DNA of 64,000 nt from Octopus sinensis (GCF_006345805.1 NC_043002.1:10230001-10294000), one strand, 5' to 3'. Positions 25,541 to 56,385 are shown, counted from the stretch's first letter. Made by a program: numbers and translations. The notes: generated by a model not told the origin, from the letters alone.

Positions 25541-25666
25541 GGTGTAGAGGATGTTTCTATGAAGCAAATTGCTTTTGTAGTGGAGAACATACGCGTTTAA
25601 ACCCATCAATGGAAGATTGTAAGGAAATATCATGTCTCAATTCACAATCGAAAGCGATGATAAGCT
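25541..25666 (+). CDS. Cys-rich secreted protein, copy 2, coding exon 2: GCRGCFYEANCFCSGEHTRLNPSMEDCKEISCLNSQSKAMIS
   Basis: tcctttatag acceptor; 126 nt open; T|gtaagt donor; 24/42 aa identical to copy 3 including all six Cys. Confidence 0.8.
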
Positions 25667-26314
25667 GTAAGTAAAAAGTAAAAAGTATTAACTATGATAA
25701 ACTTTCTTCATATTTTTCTTATCAGACGGGTTAACCGTTGGTTTTGTTTTTCTGTGTGAATAGTTACACATTTAATGAATAATGCCAGTTTTTTAACTTC
25801 GTCCTTGTAGCATTTTCTACATTTATTAGTGAAAATATATTAATTTTGTTTCGTAAACTTTTCTAGAACATAGATTATTAATTATGGATGTAAGTGGATT
25901 AAGTTACTATGAGGAGAACAGATCTAGAAAGTGTTCCACAAATTGTTTTTCAGAATTTGAAACTGTGCAAAGCGTCTGATGGAGTGATGGTGATACCGAA
26001 ATATTCATACTGCAATAATTCGTTTAGTTTAATATAGGTGAATGCTACAAATGTAAAACCTAGTATGGTGGACATCATCTGATGAGTGGAAACGGTTAAC
26101 ATTTGATTAAAGTTTAGGTTTGAAATGGAATACTTTTCCATGAGAATAAATCTCAAATTTATTTATTTAAGACCAGGATACCTAACTATCTTTTTATTTT
26201 ACTTCAATAATATTAAGCTATTTAACTAAAGAATCTCTTCAGGTTAAGCAGCCATTTTGCAATAAGAGTCAGCGTAGCACGAGTAATTTGATTCAGCACA
26301 TCAGTACTTTGACA

Positions 26315-26900
26315 GCAGCGCCATCTCAGCCAAACAGTTATTCTGTGTCGATGAAGGGAAATAACCCTGAAACAATGCGGTCCACAGATAGTGCTTTGTA
26401 CTGGTTGGGGGTGCTAATCCTCCCTGTTCGAAAATATAAGGACACAGCTAATGTGTCGTATAGCCAGCTGGAGCCGATGTATCCCAGGGCTAAACAACAG
26501 TAGCATTCGTCCCAAAGGGGACTCTTACATTAGGTTGGCAAATAATCTGCTACTAAATGTCTCACGTTGAGAGATCTAGGAACAAAAATGTTTCTCTCTA
26601 TTATATTGGTGATTGCATGTCACTTAGAAAATTTATATATATTTTCGAACAAGGATTTCGCACCGCCATCTCAGCCAAATAGTTATTCTGTGCCGATGAA
26701 GGGAAATAACCCTGAAATCGTACGGTCCACAGGTGCTAAACTCCCCCTGTCCGAAAATATAAGGACACAGATAGTGTGTCGTATAGCCAAATGGAGACGA
26801 TGTCTCCTGGAACTAAACAACCGGAACCGCCACATTAGGTTGGCAAATAATCTTTGTTTTAAATCACTGCTACTGAATATCTCTCGTTGATAGATTTAGG
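26315..26900 (+). repeat. Tandem duplication of about 340 bp inserted in intron 2 of copy 2
   Basis: cgccatctcagccaaa(c/t)agttattctgtg at about 26320 and 26664; absent at the equivalent site in copy 3 (near 53450). Confidence 0.8.
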
Positions 26901-27036
26901 AACAATAATGTTTTCACTTTACACGCACACACACACACACATGTATATATATATATATATATGTTTATAATATACATATATACATATATATATGTATGTA
27001 TGAATATGGAAAATTATAAAATTACATTTTCTTCAG

Positions 27037-27167
27037 ATTGTAAAGACACTCAAGGACAATGTTTGACCAGAGGCGTCTTTGCGTTTGACTTCTACGACTC
27101 TCGTTGTCGAACACTTTACTGCAAAGTACCACCGAGCGAAGGAAACAAGTGGCACAATATGATCAGA
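27037..27167 (+). pseudogene. Cys-rich secreted protein, copy 2, exon 3 with a 1-nt deletion near its 3' end (YCKDTQGQCLTRGVFAFDFYDSRCRTLYCKVPPSEGNKWH, then frameshift); pseudogene or sequencing error
   Basis: ttttcttcag acceptor and A|gtatgt donor as in copy 3, but 131 nt instead of 132; one extra base in cacaatatgat would restore Y-D-Q and phase 1. Confidence 0.65.
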
Positions 27168-27241
27168 GTATGTTGGTTCGACAATGTTATTCTCTCTCAC
27201 TTTTTTCTCGATTCATCTCTGCCTAATATATGTTTATGCTT

Positions 27242-27294
<53 letters not shown>

Positions 27295-28829
27295 AGAATC
27301 AATAATATGTAGAAGAATAAATACATTTAGTTGGATATCTTCAGGGACAGAAGAACAACGAAATAAACTAAGTCGAGAACAGTGTTTTCAAATATTCAAA
27401 TGTAAACAATAATTTAATAATATAATAATATAAGCGATTAAGGGACATAAATTTAATTATATGGGATGTTGTGGGTTGTTAAGGGTATTAAAGACAGAAT
27501 GAGAGATGAAATAGGTACTTGAGGGGAAAAAACGTAAATGATTTTGGGAAACAGAAGAGGAAATTAACTCTGTATATACTATAATAACTATTAATTATTT
27601 ATCAATTCTATATACTAACATATATATTCCAGTATTGAGAGAAAAGTTATTGTTTAAATATTTCAGAGATGAATATGAATATTTATACGAAGAAAATATA
27701 ATAAGTGTACAGAGAGGAAAAGGTAGAATTTATGAGGGGGGAAATAACGAAAAGGGAAGAAATGTGAGAAAAACACATATGATGTTAGGAGGGTCGGGGA
27801 AATATTCGTTAATATTATACTACGATGTTGTGTTTAGAATGTTATACGGAGAAATGTTATAATAATTATTATATAAATTCATTAGTTACTATAATTTATT
27901 AGTTTATTTTGCATATTCTTAGTTTATGCATGTGTATGCAAGTATAGTATTGGTATATCCCATTTATTTTCATTAGAAATTAAATAAAGAATTTTGACAA
28001 ATACGATTATTTATTTCCCCCCACTGTAGATTATTTTTTAATGTTCGGATAATTTTGGTATAAGAGCTTTTGAATGTTTGAGAGATCAATGGATTAAATT
28101 TATACATATATTATGATCATTGTTTTGATAATTAACCGTGCTTATATCCTGGATTTAATATGTGTGTTACATGGGTATCCTTAATACGGAAAAGTTTAAT
28201 TGATGGACTATTGAATATGCTATTTAAAATTTCAATGTTGGTATATATATGGAAGAAAAAATATATTGGAATTCACCAAGAAGTGGATATTATATAGTAT
28301 GGCATATTATATAGTATGGATATTATATAGTATGGCATAGCTATTATATAGTATGGCATAGAGTTAAGAATAAATTAATAATAGAATTTGGGGTCAAGTT
28401 TTGGAGTTTAAATAAAAATTGAATACAGGTGAGTTAATTAAAGGAAATAGAAGTAGGGGCTATGGTTTTATATATGGAGTATAAGTATGGTGGGATTAGC
28501 AATGGAGAGGATGTTACATTGTTGTATTATGATAAATTTGATATTAACTATAATGTTCGTAATTAAAAATATTAATATTAATATTAAGGGTTAAATAATG
28601 ATTATGGTGATAAAAAATGAGGGTTATAATTATGCTTCTAATTAGAAATAATGTCATTGAATAATATGAAGATGGAATCTAAATGCTAATCATTCTATTT
28701 GAATATTAAAAAGTAGGATTTTTCCATTAAAGATGTGATTAGGATGGAGTGTCTGCACCATCGGAATAAAGTATGCTTATAATATATAAAGTAATATATT
28801 ATTGTAATTATATCCAGTGCATTCTATGT

Positions 28830-29345
28830 TATTATTACAATATAGTGAAATGATATCCTCCATCAGGCATTTGCCATACTCTGAACGTCTTACTTCCCTG
28901 GACATGGACACATCGAAACTCCGACGTCTGGCAGCTGACTAGGCAGACACCCATAAAATTATCAACCATCGCACAAACAATAACTCTGAGCACCTTTTCA
29001 GACTCCACCCATCTAACACCCGTGGACATATTTACAAAGTCAGAAAACAGCACAGCTCCCATGACTTTAGGAAACATTTTTTCACGCTGAGAGTTGCTGA
29101 AGCATGGAACAAACTGCCGGCATCAGTTGTTAGTTGTCGGAGCACTGCATCCTTCAAAACTTCCATGCTTTCTGAGATTCGCCAACACTACACCTGATTT
29201 TCTCCCCTCCATACACACACAAGCATGTACCTGACTCATGCATTTTTCGCTTTCCAGACATTTGTACACTACTGCATGTGCTTTATATGCACTGTCTGAC
29301 AAGTTGTGGTGCACCTGAGCACTGTATACAATAATTTCATTATTA
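28830..29345 (+). mobile_element. CR1-type LINE 3' fragment
   Basis: Translates to YSERLTSL...RRLAAD*ADTHKII...TRGHIYKVRKQHSSHDFRKHFFTLRVAEAWNKLP; (ATT) tail. Confidence 0.8.
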
Positions 29346-30129
29346 TTATATTATTATATAATTTCATTATTATTATATATGTATTTAAAAACAATTATAT
29401 GATTATATAAATTTGGAAAAAGTATATTTATGTGCATGTAAACATTATCAATAATTTTCGGATTTATCATTTAAAAGATTTTGCATAGAGAATAGTAAGC
29501 AATACGTTTCATCTAGGCAGAGAGAGCAAGTCTTGGCTGATGGTCAATAGGGTAGAGCATTATTTGATCTTTCCATCGAATTTTATAAGTTGTATTTTTA
29601 AGTTACCACATAAATTTAATGTCCTGTATTACTTCTTTTATTAATATTTCTAAAAGATGCTTCATGTTTGGCGATACGAGATTTCACGTTGCACGCCGTT
29701 GCTCGAACATAACAGAAATATATACCTTCGGCTTCAACTGTAGTTTGGTATACTAGGTTTCTACGTTTACAGGAATTGCTAAATTTACAATTTTCTTAAA
29801 TCTACAGTCGCATTATTATATGTGTCGATTGTGTATGTATTACTGGTTCAGATTAGTCTAGGTATAATATTAGTGTCATTTTTGGTATTATTTGTGTTTC
29901 TAGTTGCAAGGGGATTATTTCAATTTGTGTAATACTCCAGTTTAATATTATTAGAAGATGATATATGTTTTAAATAAGATTTTAGTTATAGAAATTCCAA
30001 TCCTTATTATATTATTATTAATTATGTTACTGTATTTACTGGAAGAGAAATGTTATCTACTATGGAACGGATTACTCTTATGAAGTTTGTCTTTATCTGG
30101 TTGCCATAAAGTAAGATAAGCCCAATCGT

Positions 30130-30136
30130 ATCATCG

Positions 30137-30188
<52 letters not shown>

Positions 30189-30227
30189 TATCATCATAAT
30201 CATCACCACCATCATCATCATCATTAC

Positions 30228-30269
<42 letters not shown>

Positions 30270-30270
30270 G
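30130..30270. repeat. Trinucleotide microsatellite (ATC)n(ATT)n; (TTC)n(ATT)n at 35625-35730
   Basis: Directly visible. Confidence 0.95.
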
Positions 30271-30346
30271 CTTGTTGCTGCGTTTATGGTTGCTATCTGC
30301 TGTATGTTTTATATATGGAAAATGTTTCTTACGTTTATATAAACAG

Positions 30347-30395
<49 letters not shown>

Positions 30396-30600
30396 ATATA
30401 TATATATATATAGGTAGTTGAATGAATTATCTTATTATGGATAATTCGGTTAACCGATACCTGGGTAGCAAATTCACGTCAGAAAAACACGGTTGAAGCT
30501 ACATGCCAAGGGCAGAGATCACTTTGCTTTCGTGTGGAAATTTGTGTGTTTTTTAATACAAATAAATGAAAGAATGGAGTTGAACGACGATTTAACAAAA

Positions 30601-30699
30601 TTCCTTTATTCTCGACATATCTTTCGAAGGCTGCATATTCCTAATTTCGAAGGAATAAGGGGTGCATTATGCCGCCTTCTCATCAGGAAAAGCAAGGAA
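30601..30699 (-). ncRNA. Inverted copy of the 31007 hammerhead with mutated stem III (GAAAG instead of GAAAC)
   Basis: Reverse complement of the 31007-31104 motif; part of an inverted repeat of about 150 bp (30556-30712 / 30994-31143). Confidence 0.6.
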
Positions 30700-31006
30700 C
30701 TTATGTCAGCATCAAGATGAACAAAAGCTCTTAGATGACTGCCCACACGGAGCCCATAGCGATAATGAGCGTTTCTTTAAAATATTCCGTTATAAGTAGT
30801 GACGTCAAAAATGGTTGAATGTAGAAGATTCTAGAGAGTTCAAGGGTTCAAACTAGGTTGGAAGAGAGAGGTCTAAGAATAGGAAGGTGACAGGGTGCAA
30901 GTCACATGAATGGTGATTTGTTGTTGTTTTGTTTTGTGATTGAGTGTCTATGTGTGTGTATGTATATAACTGCATTCGTGTCTATGTGTGTGTATGCTGA
31001 CGTAAG

Positions 31007-31104
31007 TTCCTTGTTTTTCCTGATGAGAAGGCGGCATAATGCACCCCTTATTCCTTCGAAATTAGGAATATGCAGCCTTCGAAACATATGTCGAGAATAA
31101 GGAA
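31007..31104 (+). ncRNA. Type I hammerhead ribozyme (Penelope-type), extended stem II
   Basis: CUGAUGA 31020-31026; stem II GAAGGC/GCCUUC; GAAAC-AUAU-GUC (31081-31092); stem I UUCCUUGUUUUUC pairs with GAGAAUAAGGAA with one bulge; predicted cleavage after 31092. Confidence 0.8.
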
Positions 31105-31137
31105 TTTTGTTAAATTGTCGTTCAACTTCATTCTTTC

Positions 31138-31191
<54 letters not shown>

Positions 31192-31503
31192 TCACATATA
31201 AGTATAAACAAATTTATGTCAACACAACATAAAAATAAGATATGATTTTCTTTGCACATATTATTGACTGCTGTTAAATCAATACTCTGAATTTCTTAAA
31301 ATTCTGCATGAAGATCATTGGATTTACTTGTCATAGATGGGGATTTACCTGGGATCTGTATTCTACACACATTTACTGGTATCTACCCGTTGGAAATTTA
31401 CCTTATTTCTCTATACTGAGTGCTTATTTGATACCTGCCAGGATTTTTAAATCCCACTTTTCTGATATATATATATAAATGTGTGTGTAGTATATATGCA
31501 TGC

Positions 31504-31549
<46 letters not shown>

Positions 31550-31560
31550 TATATATATAC

Positions 31561-31727
31561 TTTATTTAAAGCAGCAGAAAATTCACACAAAACCTGTTAC
31601 TCTGAGTTTCCCGTTGCCGTTTATCGGACAGTTTTTGCTAGAATTCTAGCAAAAACTGTCTGATGAACGGCAACGGGAAACTCAGAGTAACAGTTTTTGT
31701 TGAATTTTCTGCTGCTTTAAATAAAGC
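31561..31727. repeat. Palindrome of about 165 bp formed by two head-to-head Penelope pLTR-like pieces
   Basis: Centred on gctagaattctagc; arms begin tttatttaaagcagcagaaaattc and end gaattttctgctgctttaaataaa. Confidence 0.88.
31650..31699 (+). ncRNA. Minimal type I hammerhead ribozyme (Penelope-type)
   Basis: 10-bp stem I CAAAAACUGU/ACAGUUUUUG; CUGAUGA 31660-31666; short stem II CG-GCAA-CG with an A/G closing mismatch; GAAAC-UCAGA-GUA; predicted cleavage after 31689. Confidence 0.68.
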
Positions 31728-31817
31728 ATATTACTCTACCACTGGTATTTGAGTACTCTTTTTTCCACCTTGTTTCACATTTATGTGTTTACTCCGGTAT
31801 ATATATATATATATATA

Positions 31818-31891
<74 letters not shown>

Positions 31892-32639
31892 AAGTGTGTG
31901 TATGTATGCATTATGTGTGTATATATATATATATATAAAAATATAGCATGAACGGATATTATACAGGTAAATATATAAAATGAATAGCAGCGAACCTTAC
32001 CTTCCGCATTTAAACCTATATCTCTGGTTGAATGTGGAGAGTAGATACTCAGTTTTCTCTTAACCCCGCCCCACCTACCATGCTTAAGGCCACCAAGGCT
32101 ACAAGTCTTACCCTTAAAATATATTACATATATATGCTGTTCCCTGCTATAAAACTATCTTAAACATTTGTTTTGATTTCGCAAAATCGTTCTGTGACCA
32201 GCGATGTTTGTGGAATCACAAAAGATGCACTTGTTGTAGATTTTAAATGTTCCTAATATTGTGATTCGTGTACTCATCTGAAGAAAACGTTTTTTTATAA
32301 TGTTATAAAGTACCTATTAATCAATTATAAAATTCGATGGAAATAGCTCTAATGAATTGACATCTATATATGAGCATACAAACACAACTGAAATACAAAC
32401 GTATTGTAATATTGTGTCATAATAATTCAATATGAAAATTACATGAAAACAATATGTCAGTGAAATAAACCGCCGGTTCGCAGTGTTAACTTGAGGAGGA
32501 GGTTAATTAGTTGATCTGAAATCGCCAATGAGAGAATCCTTATGTAAAAGTATGTGATACCTAGTAAGGGGCCTAGGCAAATTTTCAGAAAGAGTATGGA
32601 GAGTAGTGTATGAGCTGCACGCAAGCGTACGAGTGGCTC

Positions 32640-32935
32640 AGACGTTTCCAAGATGGCCGAAAATATGCTGTTATTCACGAACTTTCTGGCAGACCTCCAA
32701 ACAGCGGCATTGAGAAAAACAGCTCAGATGTGCAAGCAGCTGTGAGAGGAAATCACCATCTGTGAGTTACCAAAGGATGTGCAGATTAGTTACGGTTCAC
32801 TTCAGTCCATTATCACTGAAGATTTGGGTATGAGACACCTGTCTGTCAAGTTTGTGCCAAAACTGCTATCAGCCGACAAAAAATCTCTCGGGTTTCAGTT
32901 GCACAAGATCTTGATTGTGCCGAGAACATTTTGAT
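32640..32935 (+). mobile_element. Mariner transposase internal fragment
   Basis: Translates to ISYGSLQSIITEDLGMRHLSVKFVPKLLSADKK, a decayed WVPxxL-type motif. Confidence 0.75.
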
Positions 32936-32952
32936 ATATATATATATATATG

Positions 32953-32984
<32 letters not shown>

Positions 32985-33198
32985 CACACGAGTAAGCAGA
33001 AGAAGGTGGAAAAAATACTACTCGACTACCGAAGGTAAGAGTAAAATGTTTCTTTTTTTTTATTAAAGCTGCAGAATCACCAAAATAACTCTTACTCGAG
33101 GTTTCACGCTTCCGTTTGTCAGACAGATGTGATCAAGACTGGAGTGAAGATTTCAGGCTTATAGTGCTGGTTTTGCAGCTTCAATAATAAATTTCACT

Positions 33199-33241
<43 letters not shown>

Positions 33242-33289
33242 TTATATACACACATATGCAGGAAGTAATAGACATCTATAATTTTCAAA

Positions 33290-33790
33290 ATCTTTTATTT
33301 GATATTAATTGGTTGAAGGAGAGGTTTTCCTCTAGCTGCTTGTCCATAATACCTAAGCGTATTCAGATATGTAACACACTTCCTTGGACTAACTTCTAGC
33401 TGGTTTGCAATGTCAAAAGCCTTCGGACGGGCTTCGTTTCCCACAAGTCTCTTCAAACAGCGAAACTTCCTTTCCGAAGGCCCAGGTCGGCCGGGACAAG
33501 AATCTGTTGATTCTTTTCCTTGGCTTTTGAATAGCACTATAATTCTATTAACAGTCACAACAGGAATTTGAAGATTTTCGGCAATTTTTCCCGCCTAGAA
33601 TTGCCCAACAATACAACCTCTTTAAAAACCTGACATTTCTGCTGAATTTTTTTGTGCGTGGCATGGTTACGCTTCGCAAATGTTTAATATAATGGCACCT
33701 GGAATGAAAAAAAATAATTACATTGTAAATCCTACACCGCTGAAAACATATTAAGTCACTTAGATCAGGAATTTCGAAAATTAAAGGTGT
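33290..33790 (-). mobile_element. Tc1-like transposase N-terminal fragment
   Basis: ORF 33295-33558 has GRP, an HTH-like segment and YYGQAARGKPLL (Tc1 R.ARKKPLL motif). Confidence 0.75.
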
Positions 33791-33970
33791 CTATATATAT
33801 ATATAATATATATATATATATCACGTGACCGACCAGACCATCAGATGTAGTTACATATCGCTGGTCACAATGCGTTCGCATTGTTTTAGCCTTCGAATGA
33901 CGCCACCCCACTGGCTAAGCGAGCAGGCCAACAGAAGAAAGAGTGGGAGAAAGAGTGGTGAAAGAGACAG

Positions 33971-34070
33971 NNNNNNNNNNNNNNNNNNNNNNNNNNNNNN
34001 NNNNNNNNNNNNNNNNNNNNNNNNNNNNNNNNNNNNNNNNNNNNNNNNNNNNNNNNNNNNNNNNNNNNNN
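33971..34070. other. Assembly gap (100 N, real size unknown)
   Basis: Run of N. Confidence 0.99.
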
Positions 34071-34570
34071 TTTACTAAACCGGTAATTCTCAGACTGCAG
34101 TTTCTTTCTTTTCAGCAATAAAGATAATTTATTTGCCCAGGGAGAATTCTTCAGTGAGACCCTGTTTTTCTGGGATCCTAACTCACTAGAAGCATGTGCG
34201 TCTAATGAATTACTCTCCTAACTAATCATATCACTGCGCAGACCCGAACGACCGACAACACTAGGGCATTCTGGTATATCGCCTGGCGCTCATAATTTAT
34301 CGAGAAATATGTAAACAAATCAAATTGCGATAAAATAAAAATAATTATAATCGCTGGTATTACTAACACAAGCCATATATTTTTCATATATCAGTACATT
34401 AAGGCGAAATATGTGCTAGGAATACAGAAGCTTGATAAATTAAGTGAATGAAGATAAAAACATTTAACTAAACCGGTAATTCTCAGACTGCAGTTCTTTC
34501 TTTTCAGCAATAAAGATAATTTTTTGCCCAGGGAGAATTCTTCAGTGAGACCCTGAAATATATATATAAT

Positions 34571-34613
<43 letters not shown>

Positions 34614-34619
34614 CTCTTC

Positions 34620-34995
34620 TACTATTTTACTTGTTTCAGTCATTGACTGCGGCCATGCTGGAGCACCGCCTTTAATCGAGCAACTCGACCCCGGGACTTA
34701 TTCTTTTGTAAGCCCAGTACTTATTCTATCGGTTTCTTTTGCCGAACCGCTAAGTAACGGGGACATAAACACACCAGCATCGGTTGTCAAGCAATGCTAG
34801 GGGGACAAACACAGACACACAAACACACATACATATATATATATACATATATACGACGGGCTTCTTTCAGTTTCCGTCTACCAAATCCACTCACAAGGCT
34901 TTGGTTGGCCCGAGGCTATAGTAGAAGACACTTGCCCAAGGTGCAACGCAGTGGGACTGAACCCAGAACCATGTGGTTGGTAAACAAGCTACTTA
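34620..34995 (-). mobile_element. SINE family C
   Basis: Reverse complement of family C. Confidence 0.85.
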
Positions 34996-35032
34996 CCGCA
35001 CAGCCACTCATGTGCCTATATATATATATCTA

Positions 35033-35081
<49 letters not shown>

Positions 35082-35083
35082 AT

Positions 35084-35131
<48 letters not shown>

Positions 35132-35678
35132 GTGAAACTATGTGGAAAAAACATAAAAAGTGGAAGAGAAATGCCTTCGTTTCATATAGTTTAATATCTT
35201 TTTATATATGGATTTCGCAATTTAAATTAGCTTTTCAAGGGACACTGTACAGCAATCAATTCTCAGACAGAGGAGTCTCGTCATTTTGGATGTTGTATAT
35301 ATATATATATATATATACACACAGCAAATAAGTGAAATCTAGAGACGCTCAATACAGAAAACACTTTTTGATCAAACGATATGAGCTACGTGGACTAGGA
35401 CGACGGATGTAGTGAGCAACAAAAGAAATACACTTGAGCTGATATGAAGATAGCGCTGTAGGTAAAGTCGATCAAGCGTGTTATATATTAATATACGTAC
35501 ATATATACACACGGGCACGGTAACATCATTGCTTTTGTCTGCCGTAAGGCTTAATTCTCACTCAATACGCCAGCTGAATTCAATTCGTCCCCAGTCGAAA
35601 GATGCCTGTTGTTATGTCCTGTTGTTATTCTTCTTCTTCTTCTTCTTCTTCTTCTTCTTCTTTCTTCTTCTTCTTCTT

Positions 35679-35709
<31 letters not shown>

Positions 35710-36337
35710 TTATTATTATTATTATTGTTGTTTTTGTATTTATATTCGTATTATTTTTTGTTTTTTTTTTGTATTTATATTCGTTTAACATCGTCCGTTT
35801 TTCTGTCCTTGTTTCGTACACATTTGATCTTTTTCCCGAGGAATCTAATGCTCTAAGCTTAGTTTTTCTTTGGGGCTGGCCAGATTGGAGCAATCTCAAG
35901 ATTAATCAGCCGAAATTGCGAGGATGATCCGGTTCTTGACTGAAGATTAAAGGCTTCGAATGACCCGTCCGTGTTTTTTGTATCGTTTATTTGGATGTTT
36001 TGCGTTCTTGTCCCAATTGTATATTTTATATACATATACACACACACACGCGCATAGTCACACATATCTATGTATAAGGTTATAAAATATAAAAGTGCAA
36101 GTATAAAAGGAAAATATTATTTCACCAATTGACATCCATACAGCGCTGATGTTTTCGCAGCCTTTTATCATATGAAAGCAATTTATTTTATTGTATAAAA
36201 AATAAATAAGTAAATAATAAATCGTTTTACATAACTGAATGAATATATATCATATAATGCAGTTGTATAATACATAAATTAATTGCAGTGTGAATTCTTG
36301 TACTTTCATTTCATCGCCCCAATACATATATGTGTGT

Positions 36338-36722
36338 GGAAGCACTCCGTCGGTTACGACGACGAGGGTTCCGGTTGATCCGAATCAACGGAACAGCCTG
36401 CTCGTGAAATTAACGTGTAAGTGGCTGAGCACTCCACAGACACGTGCACCCTTAACGTAGTTCTCGGGGATATTCAGCGTGACACAGAGAGTGACAAAGC
36501 CGGCCCTTTGAAATACAGGTACAACAGAAACAGGAAGTAAGAGTGAGAGAAAGTTGTGGTGAAAGAGTACAGCAGGGATCACCACTACACCCTGCCGGAG
36601 CCTCGTGGAGCTTTTTTAGGTGTTTTCGCTCAATAAACACTCACAACGCCCGGTCTGGGAATCGAAACCGCGATCCTATGACTGCGAGTCCGCTGCCCTA
36701 ACCACTGGGCCATTGCGCCTCC
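36338..36722 (-). mobile_element. SINE family B
   Basis: Near-full reverse complement of 21958-22337; empty site near 16820. Confidence 0.85.
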
Positions 36723-38916: not shown

Positions 38917-38964
<48 letters not shown>

Positions 38965-38966
<2 letters not shown>

Positions 38967-43199: not shown

Positions 43200-43210
<11 letters not shown>

Positions 43211-43483: not shown

Positions 43484-43546
<63 letters not shown>

Positions 43547-43822: not shown

Positions 43823-43894
<72 letters not shown>

Positions 43895-44055: not shown

Positions 44056-44089
44056 CCCACTCGTAAATGCATTATACAAGTAGGTTGAA

Positions 44090-46900: not shown

Positions 46901-47290
46901 ATGTATGGTATCTTGTTTGGAATCATGCATTTGCGACTATTGACTAGGAGGGGTTGAAATTATGTTTCCGTGGATGGGAAGCCTGGGTACTTTAGTGAAG
47001 CACTCATTCATAAAACCATGCTTTATCGGATAGAATTACAACCAATATTCATGTAAAATAACTCCCTACAATTTTAAATACATAATACATTGGGTTATAT
47101 GTCCCCTTATAGATTATACGTTCCCTTTTGCTAAATGGGATTTTGTTCCCATTACCAAATGATTTTATATTATTTTCTTAATTTTCCAACATTTTCTGTG
47201 TTATTTGTCTAGTTATGTGTCTGTCATTTATTAATGTAAAACTAACAATGAACGTGTCATTGCAAACCTTAAACCTATTTGTATTACAGC

Positions 47291-47443
47291 TATAAATCAG
47301 AAATTCATGTAAAGAATGTATGTTTACGGTTTCCATATACCACATACGGCAGCTGTATGTTAAAATAACTCAGACTCTGAAAAAGTTTGCAAAACTTGTT
47401 AATTTTATTTTGTATGTTTTCAGCTCTCATTCAGAATTTCCAG
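47291..47443 (+). promoter_or_regulatory. Candidate TATA box and 5' non-coding exon of copy 3 (paralogues 3299-3453 and 21715-21855)
   Basis: TATAAA conserved at 3299, 21715 and 47291; a 35-bp near-invariant block follows; AG|gtaag donor conserved at 3454, 21856 and 47444. No conserved ORF here, and coding exon 1 starts at ag|ATG, which requires an upstream UTR exon. Confidence 0.5.
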
Positions 47444-48850
47444 GTAAGTTACATGCTTAGTAGAAAATTTATAATTGATGTTTTTTTCATTTTGTTTATG
47501 AAATGTGACACAAAGAACTACAACGATCAATCTCTTGATATATAGCGCTAAAAATAACGACAATTCGTTTTGAGATTTTTCTTTACTTTCATCATATCAA
47601 TAATATCAAAATCTAGTTTGCGTGAAATTTTATTCTAAAACATAGGAGAAACGCGACTTTGAAATGGATATTATTGTACTTTAATTTACATGAGCGATTA
47701 ACAAAAATGTCAATGACCAAATTATATTCTATTCGTGGCCATCACGTCATATAATTTCCCTCTTATCTAATGGGATATAGGGAAGTTTTGGTTGAAATTT
47801 CTTGCGGGTCCAGTAAAATATGTAGGCTCCCTACTAAGCATTTTATGTAATCTTTGTTCTTGGTTCCTATCGTAATGTTTGCTAGTTGCGGTTGTACCAT
47901 CAATAATCCTCACACTGAAAATTTCTTTCTTTGAAAATTGTTTTTTGTCAGAATTGTGCGCAATTCCTGCAATTCCTGCATTTCTTTTGTAACATCTCCC
48001 GCCAGAGTTTGAACCAGGGATTTGCGTTTATTAATTTATTTGTTTACTTATTAATATATTTAACTGTACTGAAATGAAACTGGTGGCTATTGGGAACTGT
48101 TGCATGAGACAAAGAACTGTGCATGCACTCTGTCAAAATATGTGTGAATGGGAACGTTCTGTCAAGTTGGTGCTGGTTCGAATCACACTGTCACTATTAT
48201 ATTTTGCTTTTATACAATATTATTGGTATTTTCGAAGTCGTTGTACCTACGTAGTAACGCAAAAAAGCTGTTAAAATCAAATTAAGTTTATTTGATGAAA
48301 TTTCAGAATTTTTGTCGCGCAACTACGCCTTAGTAGCTGGCACATACATCATGTTGCTACGTATATAATACTTTTCATTTGAATTTATCTTTATGCATAT
48401 GGATGTATACATATCTATATGGCCGTTCTTATATATAACTATAAATGCATCAGTCTATCTGTATATATGTCTACATATGTGTATGAATATATTCCTATGT
48501 GTAATTGCGATTGTAAAGTTGTGCTGATAACTGTTTATACGGTTATCCGTGGGATGTTCATGTATCAATGTTTATTGTGTTAAAATAATGAAAAAATATA
48601 TTATTTGCTCTCTTGTCTTTACACCTAAAACATTTCCCCCAGTATACGATCAACTGATAACTGATGCTAAGATGCCTCAAAACTCAGGATATTTATCTAT
48701 TACGATGAACACAATAGCATTTATAGGTTTTAAGTATGAAGGTGAAACCTTTGAAAAATTTGAGGGCTGATTAAGTTTATGCTTGTATTTGAGCCCACAC
48801 TACCACCATTGGCCTTGTGCCGACAGCAGAAAGGTTTATTATAACATGGA

Positions 48851-49233
48851 TGGAAGCACTCCGTCGGTTACGACGATGAGGGTTCCGGTTGATCCGATCA
48901 ACGGAACAGCCTGCTCGTGAAATTAACGTGTAAGTGGCTGAGCACTCCACAGACACGTGTACCCTTAACGTAGTTCTCGGGGATATTCAGCGTGACACAG
49001 AGAGTGACAAGGCCAGCCCTTTTGAAATACAGGTACAACAGAAACAGGAAGTAAGAGTGAGAGAAAGTTGTGGTGAAAGAGTACAGCAGGGATCGCCACC
49101 ACCCCCTGCCGGAGCCTCGCGGAGCTTTAGGTGTTTTCGCTCAATAAACACTCACAACGCCCGGTCTGGGAATCGAAACCGCGATCCTACGACCGCGAGT
49201 CCGCTGCCCTAACCACTGGGCCATTGCGCCTCC
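48851..49233 (-). mobile_element. SINE family B, 11-bp TSD
   Basis: TSD ttattataaca at 48836-48846 and 49236-49246. Confidence 0.88.
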
Positions 49234-49810
49234 ACTTATTATAACAATCTGTCAGATGGCTTGCTGGCAGCAGCGTTAGCACAACGTATAAGATGCTTAG
49301 CGGCATTTCAGCCGTCTTTACTTTCTGAGTTCATTTTCAACTTTGCCTTTCATCCATTTGAGACTGATAAACAAGGACCACTTGAGCACTGGGGGGAAAT
49401 AATCGACTCGCTGCAGCCCCAAAATTTCTAGCCTTGTGCCTATTCTTATAGCTAACGTCAGCGCAATAAAACTAAATATGTATGCTTGTGTTACACTTTG
49501 TTTTCTTGTTTCTTATAGACACTCCCTACTGTTAATTTTCTACTATAATTCGTGTTTTCAATTTCTTTGTCTTTAAATGTATTTCTATTTCTTGCCAGGA
49601 GAGTTACATTATATTTTGTTGTATTTTATGGATTCATTTATTGTATTTATGGTCGGTTCGCTTGTGATGTACTCTTAGTTCAGCGAGATATTAATATTTC
49701 ATTACCTACTGGACCGAATTACGCTATCCATAGAATAAGTAACATGTGAACGTTGGGAACGATATGATCAAATAGCCCACTTTCTAAAAGTTTCTTAAAT
49801 TATACGTATA

Positions 49811-50458
49811 GGATCTTTACCTTTTGACCGACAGATTTAAAAAATATTTTTTTGTAACTAAACACATTCAAACTTCGGACACTGGTAGAATGTGTCTTAT
49901 AAAATATCTTTTACTCTTAGCATTTTTGAGAAAAACTTATGTTTACGACGTTATTTCAAGTTAAAGTTCTTCTATTTCGGTAATTTCAACCAATCAATGT
50001 CGTGTAATCAGCTGAATAAAATTACTGCTGTTGTTTGTCAACAAGAACTTCCGGCGGTGTATATTTTCTTTGTCACTGTTATTTATGACAACCCTAAACC
50101 TAAAACCCTAACCCTAACCCTAACTCTAAAACCCTAACCCTAAAACCTTAATGCTAAAACCAATACAAACGCATGAACGATGTCATAAATAACAGTGACA
50201 AACGAAAAATACACCGCCGTTAGTTGTTAACAAACAACGGCAGTAATTTTATTCAGCTGAATACAAGTCATTGATTGGTTGAAATTACCGGAATACGACA
50301 ACTTTAACGTGAAATAACTTCGTAAATATAAGTCTTTCTCAAAAATGCTAAGTGTAAAAGATGTTTTTATATGACACATTCTACCAGTGTCCGAAGTTTG
50401 AAAGTGTTTAGTTACAAAAAATTATGTTTTAAATCTGTCGGTCAAAAGGTAAAGATCC
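49811..50458. mobile_element. MITE with about 280-bp imperfect TIRs, TA target duplication and an internal (CCCTAA)-like array
   Basis: ta|ggatctttaccttttgaccgacagattt ... aaatctgtcggtcaaaaggtaaagatcc|ta; telomere-like repeats at about 50093-50150; absent at the equivalent sites in copies 1 and 2. Confidence 0.88.
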
Positions 50459-51214
50459 TATGTATAAAAGAAAGGATTATCAGTATTTTTTGGTATTGAT
50501 GTTTTAGTTACTATTCTTTCCAATGGCTTGTAACAGGCTGTAATTTTGATATAAAGTCGAAGGTTTCGTATTATTTCCAATATGTATTTTACTGTGAATT
50601 ATTACTTTTGAACCGATAGGCTTTCGCGTGTGAGTAGGTCGCCATTAATGCGACGAAAATTTTGATACCAAATAATAAATGTTTAATTAAAGTCAAGAGC
50701 CTTTGTGTGTTTCTGAATGGCTAACATATGACTTCCAGGTGATGTTGATTTAGTTAAAGCACGCTGTTTCATGTCAGATCCCTTTCGCAAATATGTCTCC
50801 AATGTTCCATTTCAATTTTGGGAATATTGTCACTGGCTATACAGGATTTCATATTAATTATTAAGCAAAGTTGACATTCTGTTCTTTATTCTGGAACACG
50901 CGGCTCTAAACAAAGTAGTTTACGTGTTCCTATACATCACAGCCAGCCTTATATCTTCTCTCTACATCAGCATAATGCCCCAGTATTCCGGGTAGGTCAC
51001 CGCGACATACATTTAATTTTTATAATTTACACGTAAGAATAGAGTCGACCATTGAAGAATGAGAGACAAAATATATGCGAGAGGTGATCACCAATCTCAT
51101 ATTTGAATGTTAATATTGTTTAAATATTTGACTTTTCGAAGGAGTTACTTTAGCAACAATATTATGGAAATACCGAATATAATGAGATATTTTATTTGTA
51201 TTCTTTACTAACAG

Positions 51215-51284
51215 ATGTATATATTTCCGGTAACTTTGTTCTCACTTGTAATCCTTCCTAACGCTGTTAAGATTAATCCATTTG
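51215..51284 (+). CDS. Cys-rich secreted protein, copy 3, coding exon 1 (signal peptide): MYIFPVTLFSLVILPNAVKINPF+G
   Basis: Branch point and acceptor ctaacag directly before ATG (51215); 70-nt open frame ending at phase-1 donor G|gtaagc (51285); hydrophobic core; same length, frame and splice sites as copy 2 (24744-24813). Confidence 0.82.
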
Positions 51285-52072
51285 GTAAGCTTCAATATTC
51301 TTAAGTCTTCATCTTTGATAATGAACATGATGAGTGTATAAGATCCTGATATACTCCCATTTAAAGCCTCCATGTCTTCTTTCCATGCAGCATGCAAAGT
51401 AATTTTACGTCATGTCCGTGAAATTTCTTGAGTACAAGTCGGTAAACGTCTCATAACATCGAACATTTGAAGGAAAAGTTTTAACTTATTGAACCCCATC
51501 ATGTAAATTTTTAAAATAAAATCGAGAAGCGTAATTAATATAAAAAATTCTTAATTAAAACAATAATCTTCATTCTTTTGTGTCATTACCACGTTTTGAT
51601 AAGAAATATTTGAAAGAAAATGAATGAAATTGAAAGGAAAATACAATAAAAATTCACTCACATCATATTGATACAGTCGAAAAATTTAAAGTGAAATATT
51701 TATCTACTAAATATTAATTTCATCGATATTTCACTGCAAATTAATTATCCCGCATTTCTAGATGTCGTTGGCTAATCATCCGGCGCCCTGAATGCTCAAA
51801 GCCGCATCAGTTTCTTATCGGTCTCTTGATTATCTACAAAGACAGCAAGGGGTCAATATTGACTACACTGCTGGCATCTGCTCATCAGCGCTTTCGTCAT
51901 TCACACGATTACGACGTTTGCTAAGACCTAACAATCAAATATCATAATTAAAGGAATTTGATTCACGCAGTATTCATACTAAACCACATAAACTAAACCA
52001 CGGATCCCCCTCGTCAAACAGCGAAATAACATGTCTTTCCTTTAGCCTTCATAAATGTATTTTCTTTTACAG

Positions 52073-52198
52073 GGTGTAACGGATGTAACGAAGAAGTAAC
52101 TTGCTTTTGTAGTGGAGAAACTAAGCAATTAGAGGCATCAATGGAACATTGTGAGGAAATATCATGTCTCAACTCATTAACGAACGTTGTGAATAGCT
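52073..52198 (+). CDS. Cys-rich secreted protein, copy 3, coding exon 2 (module 1): GCNGCNEEVTCFCSGETKQLEASMEHCEEISCLNSLTNVVNS
   Basis: Acceptor ttttcttttacag; 126 nt (multiple of 3), phase 1-1; donor T|gtaagt; six Cys all conserved in copy 2 (25541-25666). Confidence 0.88.
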
Positions 52199-52329
52199 GT
52201 AAGTAAAAAGTAGTAACAAAGATTAAACTTTCTTCATATTTTTCTTATCAGACGAGTTAACTGTTGGTTTTGTTTTTCTGTATGAATACTTACACATTTA
52301 ATGTATAATGATATTAAGTTACCAGGGAA

Positions 52330-52932
52330 GGCGTCGAGCTGGCAGAACCGTTAGCACGCCGGGCGAAATGCTTCGCGGTATTTCGTCTGCCGTTACGTTC
52401 TGAGTTCAAATTCCGCTGAGGTCGACTTTGCCATTCATCCTTTCGGGGTCGTTAAATTAAGTACCAGTTACGCACTGGGGTTGATATAATTGACTTAATA
52501 CCTATGTCTGTCCCTGTTTGTCCACTCTATGTTTTAGCCCCTTGTGGGTAATAAGGAAATAGGTATTTCGTCTGCCGTTACGTTCTGAGTTCAAATTCCG
52601 CTGAGGTCGACTTTGCCATTCATCCTTTCGGGGTCGTTAAATTAAGTACCAGTTACGCACTGGGGTTGATATAATTGACTTAATACCTATGTCTGTCCTT
52701 GTTTGTCCACTCTATGTTTAGCCCCTTGTGGGTAATAAGGAAATAGGTATTTCGTCTGCCGTTACGTTCTGAGTTCAAATTCCGCTGAGGTCGACTTTGC
52801 CATTCATCCTTTCGGGGTCGATAAATTAAGTACCAGTTATGCACTGAGGTCGATATAATGGACTTAATCCGTCTGTCTGTCCTTGTTTGTCTCCTCTGTG
52901 TTTAGTCCCTTGTGGGTAGTAAAGAAATAGCT
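52330..52932 (+). mobile_element. SINE family A, tandem trimer in intron 2 of copy 3
   Basis: Three body units of about 190 bp; imperfect TSD tattaa(g/t)ttaccag; empty site near 25785. Confidence 0.88.
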
Positions 52933-53559
52933 ATTAATTTACCAGTTTTTTAGCTTCGTCCTTGTAGCATTTTCTACATTTATTAGTGTAAATATATTAA
53001 TTTTGTTTCGTAAACTTTTCTAGTACATAGATTATTAATTATGGATGTAAGTGGATTAAGTTACTATGAGGAGAACAGATCTAGAAAGTGTTCCACAAAT
53101 TGTTTTTCAGAATTCATAACTGTGCAAAGCGTCTGATGGAATGATGGTTGTTTAGAAACAGTCATACTGTATTAATATATTCAAGTAAAAAAAAGGTTAA
53201 AGCTAAAGATGCAAAATAGATTAAGGTAGACTTTGTCCCATGAGGGGAAAATGTTAACATTTAATCAAAATTTAAGTTTGAAATAGATTACTATACCATG
53301 ATAATAAACCTCAAGTTTTATTATTACTTTCATGCCAGGACACCTAACTATTTTTTAAAAAACTTTATTAAGATTAAGGCTATTTAATCAATGAATCTCT
53401 CAAAGCCAAGCAGCTATTTTGCAATAAGAGTTAGCATAGCACCAGTACTTTGGGTATACGGTTATAATGGCATAGGAAAGTCAGCAACCTGCAGGAGACC
53501 TCGAGGTTGATCAAAAACGAGATGATTACATAATAACTATTGTCTCAGTTGGTTACGCA

Positions 53560-54520
53560 TTGGAATCCAGATGGAGAATGTAATGATACCTTTGTACTCT
53601 ATGGAGAAGGTGTCAGCAGGTTTGTGATTAACAGATTAAATATATTTGCTACACCTGGATCAACTAGATAGGTCAGAATTTCTCGCGACGTGTCGGCTCC
53701 CCTCGCCACAGCATTCGCTCCGTTCCCCTCGTGCTCTTGCCATTCTCCTCCACGTTGGTCCAAACATTTTTCGTAAATCTTCTTCCTACGTGTTTGGAAG
53801 TCTTCCGAGTGGTCTGTTCCTTTCGCCTGGTTACCACTTGGCAAGCGCACGGGTCCACCGATCGTCTGTAAATCTTGCAACATATCCGGCCTTTTGTAGC
53901 TTTCAGCGGTGGAATTCTGTGACAACATTCTTCACTCCAGTTTTATGTCTGATCTCTTCGGTCCGATATTTCAACGTCTCCCTGCACTCTAAGCAGATGT
54001 TTTCCTCCTCTCTTCGTCAAGACCCAAGTCTCGCATGCGTATAGCGTTGCTGGCAAGACTGTGCTGTTGAAGAGGTTGGCACGAGTTGCCCTGTCTAGGA
54101 TCACCTTCAGCACATGCTTCAACGTGTCGAGTGATTACCATCATGTTCTTACCCTTCCCGAGATCTCATTCTCCATCTCACACATCATAGTCACTTCTTG
54201 AACGTAATACACATAACTGCCCACCTCTTCTATCTCATCGCCTTCGGCTGTTAGACGACCGGCCGTATTACTTGGTGTTCGTAGACTTGATCTTCAGGTG
54301 ACCCCTGAACCCCTTGCATGGTCTGTAGCGGATCGTTGCTCTTCACTATCAGATCTATGTCTTCAGCGACCCTGAGATGGGTGAACGGGCTCTCCGCTTA
54401 TCCTTATACCTCTGTTCAAGTGGATGTCCCGTATGGCTATTTCCAGACACGCCTTGAAAAGCTTAGGACAGATAGTATCTCCTTGCTTGACGCCCTTCCC
54501 ACCAGGAACATTCACTGTTT
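53560..54520 (-). mobile_element. Decayed RTE-clade LINE RT fragment inside intron 2 of copy 3
   Basis: Minus strand reads GDTICPKLFKACLE and GEPFTHLRVAEDIDLIVKSNDPLQTM (RTE RT motifs QGD.ISPKLF and LTHLRFADD); absent from the copy 2 intron. Confidence 0.75.
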
Positions 54521-55167
54521 ATTTACCTCATTCTATTTAATTACATACTTAAAACTTCCTGTATCAACATGACTGTTCTGCTTACGATTCTTTTTACCCA
54601 AATATCCATCCAACTATGTATTTTCTCCGCTCACAACTCTTGGAAGGTTTAGCCATTTACACGTCATGGAAACCAGGAAAACCGTGCCTATGAGTCATAT
54701 GATTTCCGACAGTAAAATTCAGGAGAGATGGGATTGATGATGATGACGATAATATTGACAGACATAGGAACGACGGAATCCTCAATGCAAAGATTTCGTC
54801 GAAATGCTTCCATGAAAGTCAACGGGACAAAAAAGGCAAAGAAGCCCTCTTTGTGGTTTTAAACCAGAATAAAGGTTACGACTGCAACCGACGTAAGCCA
54901 CAGTAAGATTCGAACATGGGACACAATAGGCAGAAGTACCATAATGTACTCGGCAACAAGTATGGCGCATTTCTTAGTATTTCATTTATCGACCGCAGAA
55001 GGATCAAAGACTGCTTGATTGGTATCTTTTGTGGTAGATACAATGTCTTCGTGTCACGTGTCTCATGTTTAGTCACTTAAATTTTGTAATCCTTTTTTAT
55101 GCGTGTGGAATTTACGTAGTGTAATACTTACTGTTTGCCATGTCTCTTACATAGCACATGATATAAT

Positions 55168-55592
55168 AGATCTTTTCAGTTTGAACGGCAGTTTTTAACA
55201 TAATTTCTAGGTAACTAAAAAAATTTTAACTTCGTATACTGATAGAATGTGTTTATAAAACATCTTTTTCTCTTTGCTTTATTGAGAAAATTCTATAGTT
55301 TGTAAGATATTTGTTGTGTTTTTTTCTTCAATTTCTGCAATTTCAACCAATCAATGACGTCTATTGAGGTAAAAAACATTCTGTGCCGTATGAATATGTC
55401 CCTCGTTTAAGAAACAGATTGGGTTTATTTACCTTTGTGAAGAAAAAAAGATACCCTTCCCCCCACTCCTAACCCTAATTCTAACTATAAAACAGATTGA
55501 AATGCAATAGATCGATACTATAGTCATAATTATGGGTGACAATTTCATATGACACCGCTAGAAAAAACTGCCGTTCAAACCGAAAAGATTCG
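55168..55592. mobile_element. Related MITE-like element with about 30-bp TIRs and a cctaaccctaa core
   Basis: gatcttttcagtttgaacggcagttttt ... aaaaactgccgttcaaaccgaaaagatt; shares caaccaatca and ccctaa motifs with the 49811 element. Confidence 0.7.
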
Positions 55593-56175
55593 ATATAACT
55601 ATGTGTCACATTTTCTATGTAACACTTTACACACACACACACACGCACACATACACACACACATATACATATACATAAGAGGTTCTTTTAGACGACTTTC
55701 ATTTGTATATATGAAAAACATGACTTCACAAATACAATTGCACAACATTTTTTGAATATCTGACGAAGCTATAAGGCGATACACTACCAACCAACTATTA
55801 GTGAACTGTATCCCACGGCAAAAACACCTTTAATCTGATGAAGAACATTCCACTAATACTCGTCACCTTCGCAATATATACATACATATATACATACATA
55901 TATATATATATATATATAATTATTATTTGAGGGAATAAATCCAAACTTACAGGGAAAAAATTCAATTTAGAAATACTAAATCAAATTTCACACAATATAA
56001 TATATATGTAAAAATTAGAAAAAAACACCTTTTATCAATTCAAAATGAACAATTAAATTACACCATCTAGAAAATTACATATTATAGGTTTTAAAATATA
56101 TTCTTTTCTAGATGGTATAGGAATATCCTTCAATGATGAATTCCAAAAGAGTGGTTCTATTTTACCTGTATATTG

Positions 56176-56242
<67 letters not shown>

Positions 56243-56253
56243 ATTTCTTTCAG

Positions 56254-56385
56254 ATTGTAAAGACAATCAAGGACAATGTTTGACCGAAGGCTACTTTGTG
56301 CTTGGCTCCTATGACTTTCGTTGCCGAACACTTTACTGCCGAGTACCGACAAGCCAATTCAAAAACTTGACGCGCTATGATCAGA
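56254..56385 (+). CDS. Cys-rich secreted protein, copy 3, coding exon 3 (module 2): YCKDNQGQCLTEGYFVLGSYDFRCRTLYCRVPTSQFKNLTRYDQ
   Basis: Acceptor tttctttcag; 132 nt, phase 1-1; donor A|gtatgt; four Cys conserved in copy 2 (27037-27167). Confidence 0.88.

Follow-up and report, generated by a model that had tools for sequence, protein, structure and literature searches.

Neutral-like divergence around a conserved cysteine scaffold in tandem copies of an Octopus secreted-protein gene, with a tentative burst of replacement in one copy

Introduction

Does a small octopus gene family evolve like a toxin, or are the differences between its copies about what neutral change would leave behind? The question is raised by 64,000 nucleotides (nt) of Octopus sinensis DNA (GCF_006345805.1, NC_043002.1:10230001-10294000), here called the window and used for all coordinates unless another locus is named. 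In this region an uncharacterised gene for a small, cysteine-rich secreted protein is present in tandem copies; its family is so far restricted to Octopus. An earlier note on this DNA had counted by hand the differences between copies at 25541-56385, had found nearly all of them to be non-synonymous around an unchanged set of cysteines, and had proposed toxin-like accelerated evolution. The hand count is correct, yet it is no evidence for selection. We think it likely that the locus reflects birth-and-death evolution of a lineage-restricted, secreted, disulfide-rich protein, in which the paralogues diverge in a neutral-like way and the scaffold is kept by purifying selection. Positive selection is suggestive but not established, and nothing in the analysis shows a toxin.

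Results and discussion

Three unequal copies of a four-exon gene

A scan for open reading frames found cysteine-rich pieces of one kind at 25459-25671 and 52030-52203 and of a second kind at 27012-27242 and 56244-56543, and tblastn over the window found each cysteine-rich piece (exon 2 and exon 3) in two copies and no more. The spliced exon 2-3 peptide of the more downstream gene, copy 3, matches, in protein databases, the O. bimaculoides protein LOC128248167 isoform X2 (P0001, 131 amino acids, E=5.6e-25) and the O. vulgaris hypothetical protein P0002; P0019 is a further relative in O. bimaculoides. Exon 1 and the terminal exon were placed with these two relatives as tblastn guides and with the AG/GT splice sites checked. 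Four coding exons, of 70, 126, 132 and 68 nt, make up the gene, and every intron is in phase 1; this holds for copy 3, for O. vulgaris and for both O. bimaculoides genes. The ATG and a hydrophobic signal peptide lie in exon 1; six cysteines are encoded by exon 2, four by exon 3, and two, together with the stop codon, by the terminal exon. In the product, of about 131 amino acids, the signal peptide is followed by a mature chain of about 108 residues bearing 12 cysteines. The hydrophobic N-terminus suggests that the protein is secreted, and the mature chain presumably forms six disulfide bonds. The cysteines are spaced C-x2-C-x5/6-C-x-C-x13-C-x4-C-x11-C-x6-C-x14-C-x4-C-x16-C-x19-C, and all 12 are invariant in an alignment of 10 family members. 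Besides them, only Lys68, Asp69, Gly72 and Gly83 are nearly invariant in that alignment, with the Lys-Asp pair placed after the seventh cysteine.

The window is AT-rich, and self-comparison divides it into three tandem units of about 22 kb each, starting near 343, 21494 and 44064, each of which derives from one gene of the 12-cysteine family. The features of the three copies described next are all on the plus strand. The three copies are not equivalent paralogues: copy 3 is intact, copy 2 is frameshifted, and copy 1 consists of a terminal exon only.

The third unit opens with an upstream region at 44064-51214, recognised by self-similarity and 98.4% identical to the O. vulgaris locus L001. Copy 3 exon 1 follows at 51215-51284 (ATG and signal peptide, ending in phase 1; placed by tblastn with P0001 between AG/GT sites, and identical in L001). 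Exon 2 is at 52073-52198 (126 nt, six cysteines; three differences from O. vulgaris, all non-synonymous), exon 3 at 56254-56385 (132 nt, four cysteines; two differences from O. vulgaris, both synonymous), and the terminal exon at 57414-57481 (two cysteines and the stop; peptide identical to the C-terminus of O. vulgaris P0002). Together the four exons make an intact 131-residue reading frame with all 12 cysteines, and both frame and splice sites are intact in three species. Copy 3 has no annotation in the source assembly.

Copy 2 begins, after an upstream region at 21494-24743 that opens the second unit by self-similarity, with exon 1 at 24744-24813 (signal peptide; 87.5% identity to the start of O. 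bimaculoides P0001) and exon 2 at 25541-25666 (126 nt, six cysteines). The start of copy 2 exon 2 and the end of copy 3 exon 3 are the two limits, 25541 and 56385, that the earlier note had given, and exon 2 of both copies and exon 3 of copy 3 have AG/GT splice sites. Exon 3 of copy 2, at 27037-27167, is 131 nt long where every relative has 132; the first 10 cysteines are present, but the loss of one nucleotide in a short homopolymer stretch near 27135-27145 breaks the frame after the tenth. In the same exon the nearly invariant Gly83 is replaced by Asp, and no terminal exon was found in what has been assembled. Either decay or poor assembly would explain the state of copy 2.

Copy 1 is a relic. 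Its upstream region (343-5505) is paralogous to those of copies 2 and 3 by self-similarity, and this homology ends about 120 nt before the expected ATG, with no trace of exons 1-3 between 5505 and 11849. What is left of the gene is a terminal exon at 11985-12052, with an open frame in which the last cysteine has become Tyr and one new cysteine has appeared. It differs from its O. bimaculoides counterpart at 14.7% of sites and its flanks differ at about 14%, and because the divergence equals that of its own flanks the exon looks neutral. The O. bimaculoides counterpart (L004 330-397) keeps both cysteines and an open frame, and occurs in no annotated protein.

The differences between copies 2 and 3 match a neutral expectation

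A recount of copy 2 against copy 3 reproduced the hand count of exon 2 exactly (28 differences in 126 nt, 18 of 42 residues changed, and one silent change among the codons for identical residues). It likewise gave 10 changed residues in the first 34 codons of exon 3 (11 in 35) with three silent changes, and, in the terminal exon of copy 1 against copy 3, 14 of 21 residues changed with one silent change. All 10 cysteines of exons 2-3 are kept, which is beyond chance (hypergeometric P=0.006), and the cysteine scaffold is therefore under selection.

The counts behind the phrase "nearly all differences non-synonymous" are therefore right, but the share that they describe is not above chance (binomial P 0.26-0.67). 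A high share is expected because non-synonymous sites outnumber synonymous ones about 4:1. The observed and expected non-synonymous fractions are 0.86 vs 0.81 in exon 2, 0.75 vs 0.79 in exon 3 and 0.89 vs 0.81 in the terminal exon, and over exons 1-3 the fraction is 0.82, with about 0.77-0.80 expected when the ratio of non-synonymous to synonymous divergence (dN/dS, or ω) is 1. Counting by hand also understates the synonymous steps because silent changes were scored in identical-residue codons only; the Nei-Gojobori method finds 4.0 synonymous steps in exon 2 rather than 1. The copy 1 member of the terminal-exon comparison is a relic that has lost the last cysteine.

With the frameshifted codon of copy 2 treated as missing data here and in the later alignments, Nei-Gojobori estimates are dN 0.281 and dS 0.192 (ratio 1.47) for exon 2, dN 0.213 and dS 0.270 (0.79) for exon 3, and dN 0.273 and dS 0.227 (1.20) for exons 1-3; the ratio is 1.06 for the mature chain and 1.31 when its cysteine codons are left out. 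None of these regions has a ratio significantly above 1 (Fisher P>=0.56), which is the result that the earlier note itself had named as speaking against its claim. The signal peptide encoded by exon 1 differs at 11 of 23 residues with dN 0.39, compared with 0.25 for the mature part.

The earlier note had also proposed that dS be compared with the divergence of the adjacent introns. Jukes-Cantor divergence between copies 2 and 3 is 0.228 in intron 1, 0.201 in the 500 nt upstream and 0.178 in the alignable part of intron 2, so that a dS of 0.23 stands beside 0.20-0.23 for intron 1 and the upstream DNA. A low dS caused by gene conversion or codon bias is ruled out, since dS is not low and conversion is negligible. 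When copies 2 and 3 of the window and of O. bimaculoides are compared four ways, 128 sites follow the orthology pattern, 9 a concerted pattern and 2 the third pattern; the duplication therefore predates the species split, and gene conversion has been minor. Non-coding divergence is about 0.23 between paralogues and about 0.12 between orthologues, and the age of the duplication would be roughly double that of the O. bimaculoides split. Measured directly against non-coding DNA, the non-synonymous divergence of the copy 2/copy 3 pair is marginally raised (59/258 vs 314/1795, P=0.04).

Orthologues separate a constrained copy from a fast one

The loci compared were O. vulgaris L001, O. bimaculoides L004 and L005, and a third clade made up of O. 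vulgaris P0004 and O. bimaculoides P0021. L001 is 97-98.4% identical to window 34583-63941. The loci are collinear and keep the same order in O. bimaculoides and O. vulgaris, with the copy 2 orthologue first and the copy 3 orthologue next; in O. vulgaris, L001 starts about 7 kb downstream of copy 2, and a further locus, L007, ends about 29 kb upstream of the equivalent of the window. The orthologue set is 396 nt long and free of insertions and deletions in the copy 2 and copy 3 orthologues of the relatives and in copy 3 of the window. As a yardstick for exon divergence we used collinear non-coding alignments. Totals over exons and their 300-nt flanks were dropped for this purpose, as several flanks are non-homologous insertions (p ~0.5).

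The two copies differ by this measure. For copy 2, the window and O. bimaculoides give dN 0.060, dS 0.170 and ω 0.36 (P=0.018), and non-synonymous change per site is 0.47 times that of local non-coding DNA (15/258 vs 608/5233, P=0.0025). The same comparison for copy 3 gives dN 0.202, dS 0.227 and ω 0.89, with non-synonymous change per site 1.8 times that of non-coding DNA (55/312 vs 543/5200, P=2e-4) and an excess that also holds over all exon sites (71/396 vs 543/5200, P=2e-5). Copy 3 of the window and that of O. vulgaris differ at six positions; the three non-synonymous ones all lie in exon 2, and the other three are synonymous.

Changes were assigned to branches by polarising them with outgroups. 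About 30 non-synonymous and 3 synonymous changes fall on the branch to the copy 3 pair of the window and O. vulgaris, and 18 and 7 on that of copy 3 of O. bimaculoides. For copy 2 the window branch has 9 non-synonymous and 3 synonymous changes, including the loss of the near-invariant Gly, and the O. bimaculoides branch has 4 and 6. The idea of accelerated evolution is thus partly rescued by the orthologues, tentatively and at nominal significance only.

Codon models

Maximum likelihood models of the Goldman-Yang type were fitted to five and to seven sequences. With five sequences the one-ratio ω is 0.84 (P=0.45 against ω=1), and when branches are put in classes the copy 2 clade has ω 0.35 (P=0.027, below 1), the duplication stem 2.1 (not significant) and the copy 3 clade 0.88; M2a vs M1a and M8 vs M7 both give P=0.070. 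With seven sequences the one-ratio ω is 0.74, not different from 1, and M2a vs M1a gives P=0.096, while M8 is favoured over M7 (P=0.026) and over M8a (P=0.014) with about 40% of sites at ω ~1.7. M1a puts 28-39% of sites at ω 0.06-0.14. A free-ratio model beats the one-ratio model (P=0.017), so ω varies among branches. Under F3x4, ω is 8.3 on the copy 3 stem of the O. vulgaris group (P=0.004 against one ratio, P=0.028 against ω=1). With F1x4 in place of F3x4, the one-ratio ω is 0.76, the stem has ω 5.3 (P=0.036 against ω=1), and M8 is again favoured over M7 (P=0.032) and M8a (P=0.013). The site models are borderline: M8 vs M7, which the earlier note had suggested, is nominally significant with seven sequences (P=0.026-0.032), and M2a vs M1a is not significant (P=0.07-0.10).

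Weighing the explanations

One reading of these results is sustained diversifying selection on the loops between cysteines, driven by an arms race or by recognition as in conotoxins, defensins and gamete-recognition proteins. It would account for a frozen scaffold with variable loops and for a tandem array with gene turnover, and it draws on the seven-sequence M8 results, on ω of 6-9 for both the copy 3 post-duplication stem and the O. vulgaris-group stem, and on the 1.8-fold excess of copy 3 exons over flanking non-coding DNA. We consider it rather unlikely all the same, given that pairwise ω (1.06-1.3) and M2a vs M1a are not significant, that one-ratio ω lies at 0.74-0.84, that copy 2 orthologues have ω 0.36, and that the recent differences in copy 3 divide equally, 3 non-synonymous and 3 synonymous. 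The signal peptide, moreover, is less conserved than the mature part, unlike in conotoxin superfamilies, and profile searches of Pfam and PDB show no toxin-family similarity. Of the toxin-like acceleration first proposed, what survives with the orthologues added is the frozen 12-cysteine scaffold, an ω that varies among branches with one fast branch at nominal P, and amino-acid change in copy 3 at 1.8 times the rate of its own introns. Pure relaxation lies at the other extreme: the window copies would be non-functional and their differences unconstrained drift. An overall ω near 1 fits this, as do the copy 1 relic, the frameshift, lost Gly and absent terminal exon of copy 2, and the fact that copy 3 is unannotated in the source assembly and that the O. 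vulgaris models skip exon 3. We find decay of this kind improbable, however, since all 10 cysteines are kept between copies and all 12 in the family, the copy 3 frame and splice sites are intact in three species, the copy 2 lineage has ω significantly below 1, and M1a places 28-39% of sites at low ω. Drift alone would also not let amino-acid change in copy 3 outpace non-coding DNA.

Equally improbable in our judgement is that the burst in copy 3 comes from a locally raised exon mutation rate, or from conversion by an unsampled paralogue, and not from selection on the protein. Synonymous divergence in copy 3 is also raised, many codons have two or three changes, further paralogues lie nearby and not all of them are sampled, and exon 2 holds a cluster of three of the nine sites with a concerted pattern. 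An imported tract or raw mutation would nevertheless carry synonymous changes in proportion, which a ratio of about 30:3 does not show; copy 2 exons are not accelerated, intron 1, adjoining exon 2, has an ordinary divergence of 0.10-0.12, and the derived residues are found in no sampled paralogue.

Our preferred reading, birth-and-death evolution with neutral-like paralogue divergence and a selected scaffold, would run as follows. Since the duplication, synonymous sites, introns and most non-cysteine codons would have diverged at about one neutral rate, and purifying selection would hold the cysteines and a few other residues (the Lys-Asp after the seventh cysteine and two Gly), with weak constraint at most other positions. 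Under neutral divergence with a site ratio of about 4:1, almost all differences therefore change an amino acid without any extra selection. The copy 2 lineage would have been constrained until recently and now looks damaged in the window genome. In the copy 3 lineage, amino-acid replacement may have come in a burst on the branch to the O. vulgaris group, after which constraint returned, with loops that are free, or episodically selected, to change. This burst may have been adaptive. A real adaptive burst in copy 3 in the ancestor of the O. vulgaris group (about 30 replacements to 3 silent changes, faster than non-coding DNA), stabilised afterwards, beside a copy 2 that was constrained and is now decaying, is a possibility that we hold doubtfully.

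Several points weigh against the preferred reading and the burst that goes with it. Synonymous divergence in copy 3 is itself about 1.9 times non-coding (16/81, P=0.016), so the raised rate could reflect higher exon mutation or a biased yardstick and not selection. If codons with multiple hits are assigned conservatively, the copy 3 branch becomes 27:6 (P=0.29). The codon models were run with our own code rather than PAML or HyPhy, on a data set of 5-7 sequences, each 131 codons long; no instance of ω above 1 is robust, M2a vs M1a, the conservative test, gives P=0.07-0.10, and the high-ω branch was chosen post hoc, with P ~0.3 after correction for 11 branches. A sequencing error in the homopolymer may account for the copy 2 frameshift. 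The protein collection searched does not contain the exact copy 3 protein, and AlphaFold2 confidence (predicted local distance difference test, pLDDT) was 42.7 for P0001 alone and 45.4 with the 10-member alignment, too low to give a fold or a disulfide pattern.

The assembly gap and the terminal exon of copy 2

The only run of N in the window, at 33971-34070, touches none of the compared exons, and the counts of the earlier note therefore stand. The copy 2 orthologue of O. bimaculoides has its terminal exon at L004 19717-19784, 6.8 kb beyond exon 3. Against O. bimaculoides intron 3, the window keeps collinearity as far as 32555 (= L004 17769) and no further, and collinearity with O. vulgaris begins again at 34583 (= L001 944). 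The collinear anchors thus leave an interval, 32556-34582, that is collinear with neither relative, holds the N gap and is where the terminal exon would be expected. The first 943 bases of L001 (1-943) are without a counterpart in the window, and the first 224 of them match O. bimaculoides 2.8 kb past its terminal exon. Both flanks of the gap are repeats, and continuity of the sequence across it is unsupported. As the expected site of the exon is this unassembled interval, the exon is either hidden in the gap or deleted, and we believe that the gap probably hides it.

An alternative terminal exon of copy 2 survives as a remnant at 29481-29552 (+), detected by tblastn with P0020 at 67% identity with four stops and collinear with L004 14978-15052. 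Its counterpart is the terminal exon used by O. bimaculoides LOC128248167 isoform X1.

Relatives of the family and their annotation

When 1.84 billion representative proteins were searched exhaustively with HMMER, 10 relatives were returned, each from O. bimaculoides, O. vulgaris or O. sinensis and each named "uncharacterized" or "hypothetical", one of them with the automatic UniProt label "UPAR/Ly6 domain-containing". The named relatives in O. bimaculoides RefSeq are LOC128248166 and LOC128248167, with the paralogues LOC128248169, LOC128248170, LOC128248178, LOC128248058, LOC128248081, LOC106872966 and LOC106869804; others are O. sinensis LOC118763715 and O. vulgaris CAI9724926, CAI9724927 and CAI9723911. 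The LOC128248166/LOC128248167 group shares with the window genes the four-exon phase-1 structure, the signal peptide and 12-cysteine pattern, and the gene order. It differs in sequence, with 59% identity between P0001 and copy 3 of the window across exons 2-3, and in that copies 1 and 2 of the window are incomplete.

Pfam gave no meaningful match for the exon 2-3 peptides of the window or for the 10 family members (E up to 10), and a search of PDB sequences with the family profile matched no chain. A Foldseek search of PDB with the low-confidence models found nothing at E<=0.001, the best and weak matches being VWC or FnI-like modules at E>=0.26. An Rfam scan of the window gave no match, and a literature search by locus names and topic found nothing on these loci or this family.

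In O. vulgaris, the P0002 model has as its first exon an upstream one some 9 kb ahead of the copy 3 ATG (window 42338-42415, L001 10001-10078, with a paralogous piece at 19830-19919) and skips exon 3. The P0011 model likewise skips exon 3, which is intact in the O. vulgaris genome. As every intron is in phase 1, leaving out exon 3 does not disturb the frame, and the models reflect either real alternative splicing or mis-annotation.

Neighbourhood and repeats

The O. vulgaris DNA upstream of the window equivalent (L007, OX597819.1, 123.54-123.66 Mb) contains at least three further members of the family array, at about 23276-38617 (-), 79417-79539 (+) and 100332-108628 (+), so that one is on the opposite strand. 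One member of L007 has a duplicated terminal-exon-like piece at 108461-108517.

Short tandem arrays of a 184-bp unit are scattered through the window. One lies in copy 3 intron 2 (52377-52935, 3.0 copies, 95% identity) and has no match at the corresponding place in copy 2; the others are at 6194-6610, 21071-21488, 23432-23832 (-), 38962-39180 (-), 40448-40802 and 45943-46286. The unit carries a tRNA-like "GTTCAAATTCCGC" motif and for this reason looks like a satellite derived from a short interspersed element (SINE). In the same intron, 53884-55742 (1.86 kb) has no counterpart at the orthologous O. vulgaris locus, which points to an insertion or a deletion since divergence. Inverted repeats of about 300 bp at 49791-50090 and 50181-50473 (89% identity, ~90-bp spacer) lie 0.75-1.4 kb upstream of the copy 3 ATG, and a related copy is found at 55169-55380.

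Retrotransposon fragments occur at 13281-14372 (-) and 62685-63182 (+). A reverse-transcriptase domain (RVT_1, E=6e-8) is encoded in a 364-residue open frame, and a C-terminal piece related to it lies near the window end. A 157-residue open frame at 38053-38523 (+) has a Cys/His-rich stretch and no Pfam match; the region is repeated at 16813-18110, and the frame is probably part of a mobile element.

Implications

The main value of this analysis is corrective: the striking hand count is the one that neutral change gives in a small gene with a site ratio of about 4:1, and two of the three "paralogues" that were compared are incomplete. It also flags genes that are unannotated or mis-annotated, namely copy 3 in the source assembly and the O. 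vulgaris models that lack exon 3. The most likely class for the product would be an extracellular binding or recognition protein, in defence, venom or saliva, or reproduction, among which we make no choice. Were the burst in copy 3 real and adaptive, the family would be a lineage-specific recognition, defence or venom component with a part in species-level divergence. It would then offer a tractable case in which a secreted protein specific to cephalopods underwent episodic adaptive change, and it would be a candidate for a role, in octopus, in saliva or venom, in immunity, or in the recognition of gametes or chemicals.

Comparison with known systems

In conotoxin superfamilies and in snake-venom phospholipase A2 (PLA2) and three-finger toxin genes, exons are more divergent than introns and the cysteines are frozen. 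The octopus genes resemble these in being small secreted proteins from tandem or expanded arrays with invariant cysteines and variable loops, and in a copy 3 lineage whose exons are 1.8 times more divergent than introns. They differ in a signal peptide that is not conserved, in ω that is not robustly above 1, in a copy 2 under purifying selection, and in the lack of sequence or fold similarity in Pfam, PDB profile and Foldseek searches (the last on low-pLDDT models). The test of exon over intron divergence itself holds for copy 3 orthologues, is opposite for copy 2 and is marginal for the copy 2/copy 3 pair.

The automatic UniProt name of member P0005 (A0A0L8H3R2), "UPAR/Ly6 domain-containing protein", invites a comparison with the Ly6/uPAR domain, which has 8-10 cysteines, a CC doublet and a C-terminal C-x-x-x-x-C-N motif. 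Both are cysteine-rich extracellular modules of about 100 residues that open with C-x2-C-x6-C. The octopus family, in contrast, has 12 cysteines, no adjacent cysteine pair and no terminal C-N in the 10-member alignment, and Pfam UPAR_LY6 and toxin models match neither the 10 members (E up to 10) nor the exon 2-3 peptides of the window.

Among molluscs, a hypervariable cysteine-rich family is represented by MgCRP-I of Mytilus, which is reported to have six cysteines and a conserved pre-pro region (PMC4558851). These two features set it apart from the octopus family, to which no sequence relation was found in this analysis. The two families are alike in being lineage-restricted and secreted, with an invariant cysteine array and a hypervariable mature region.

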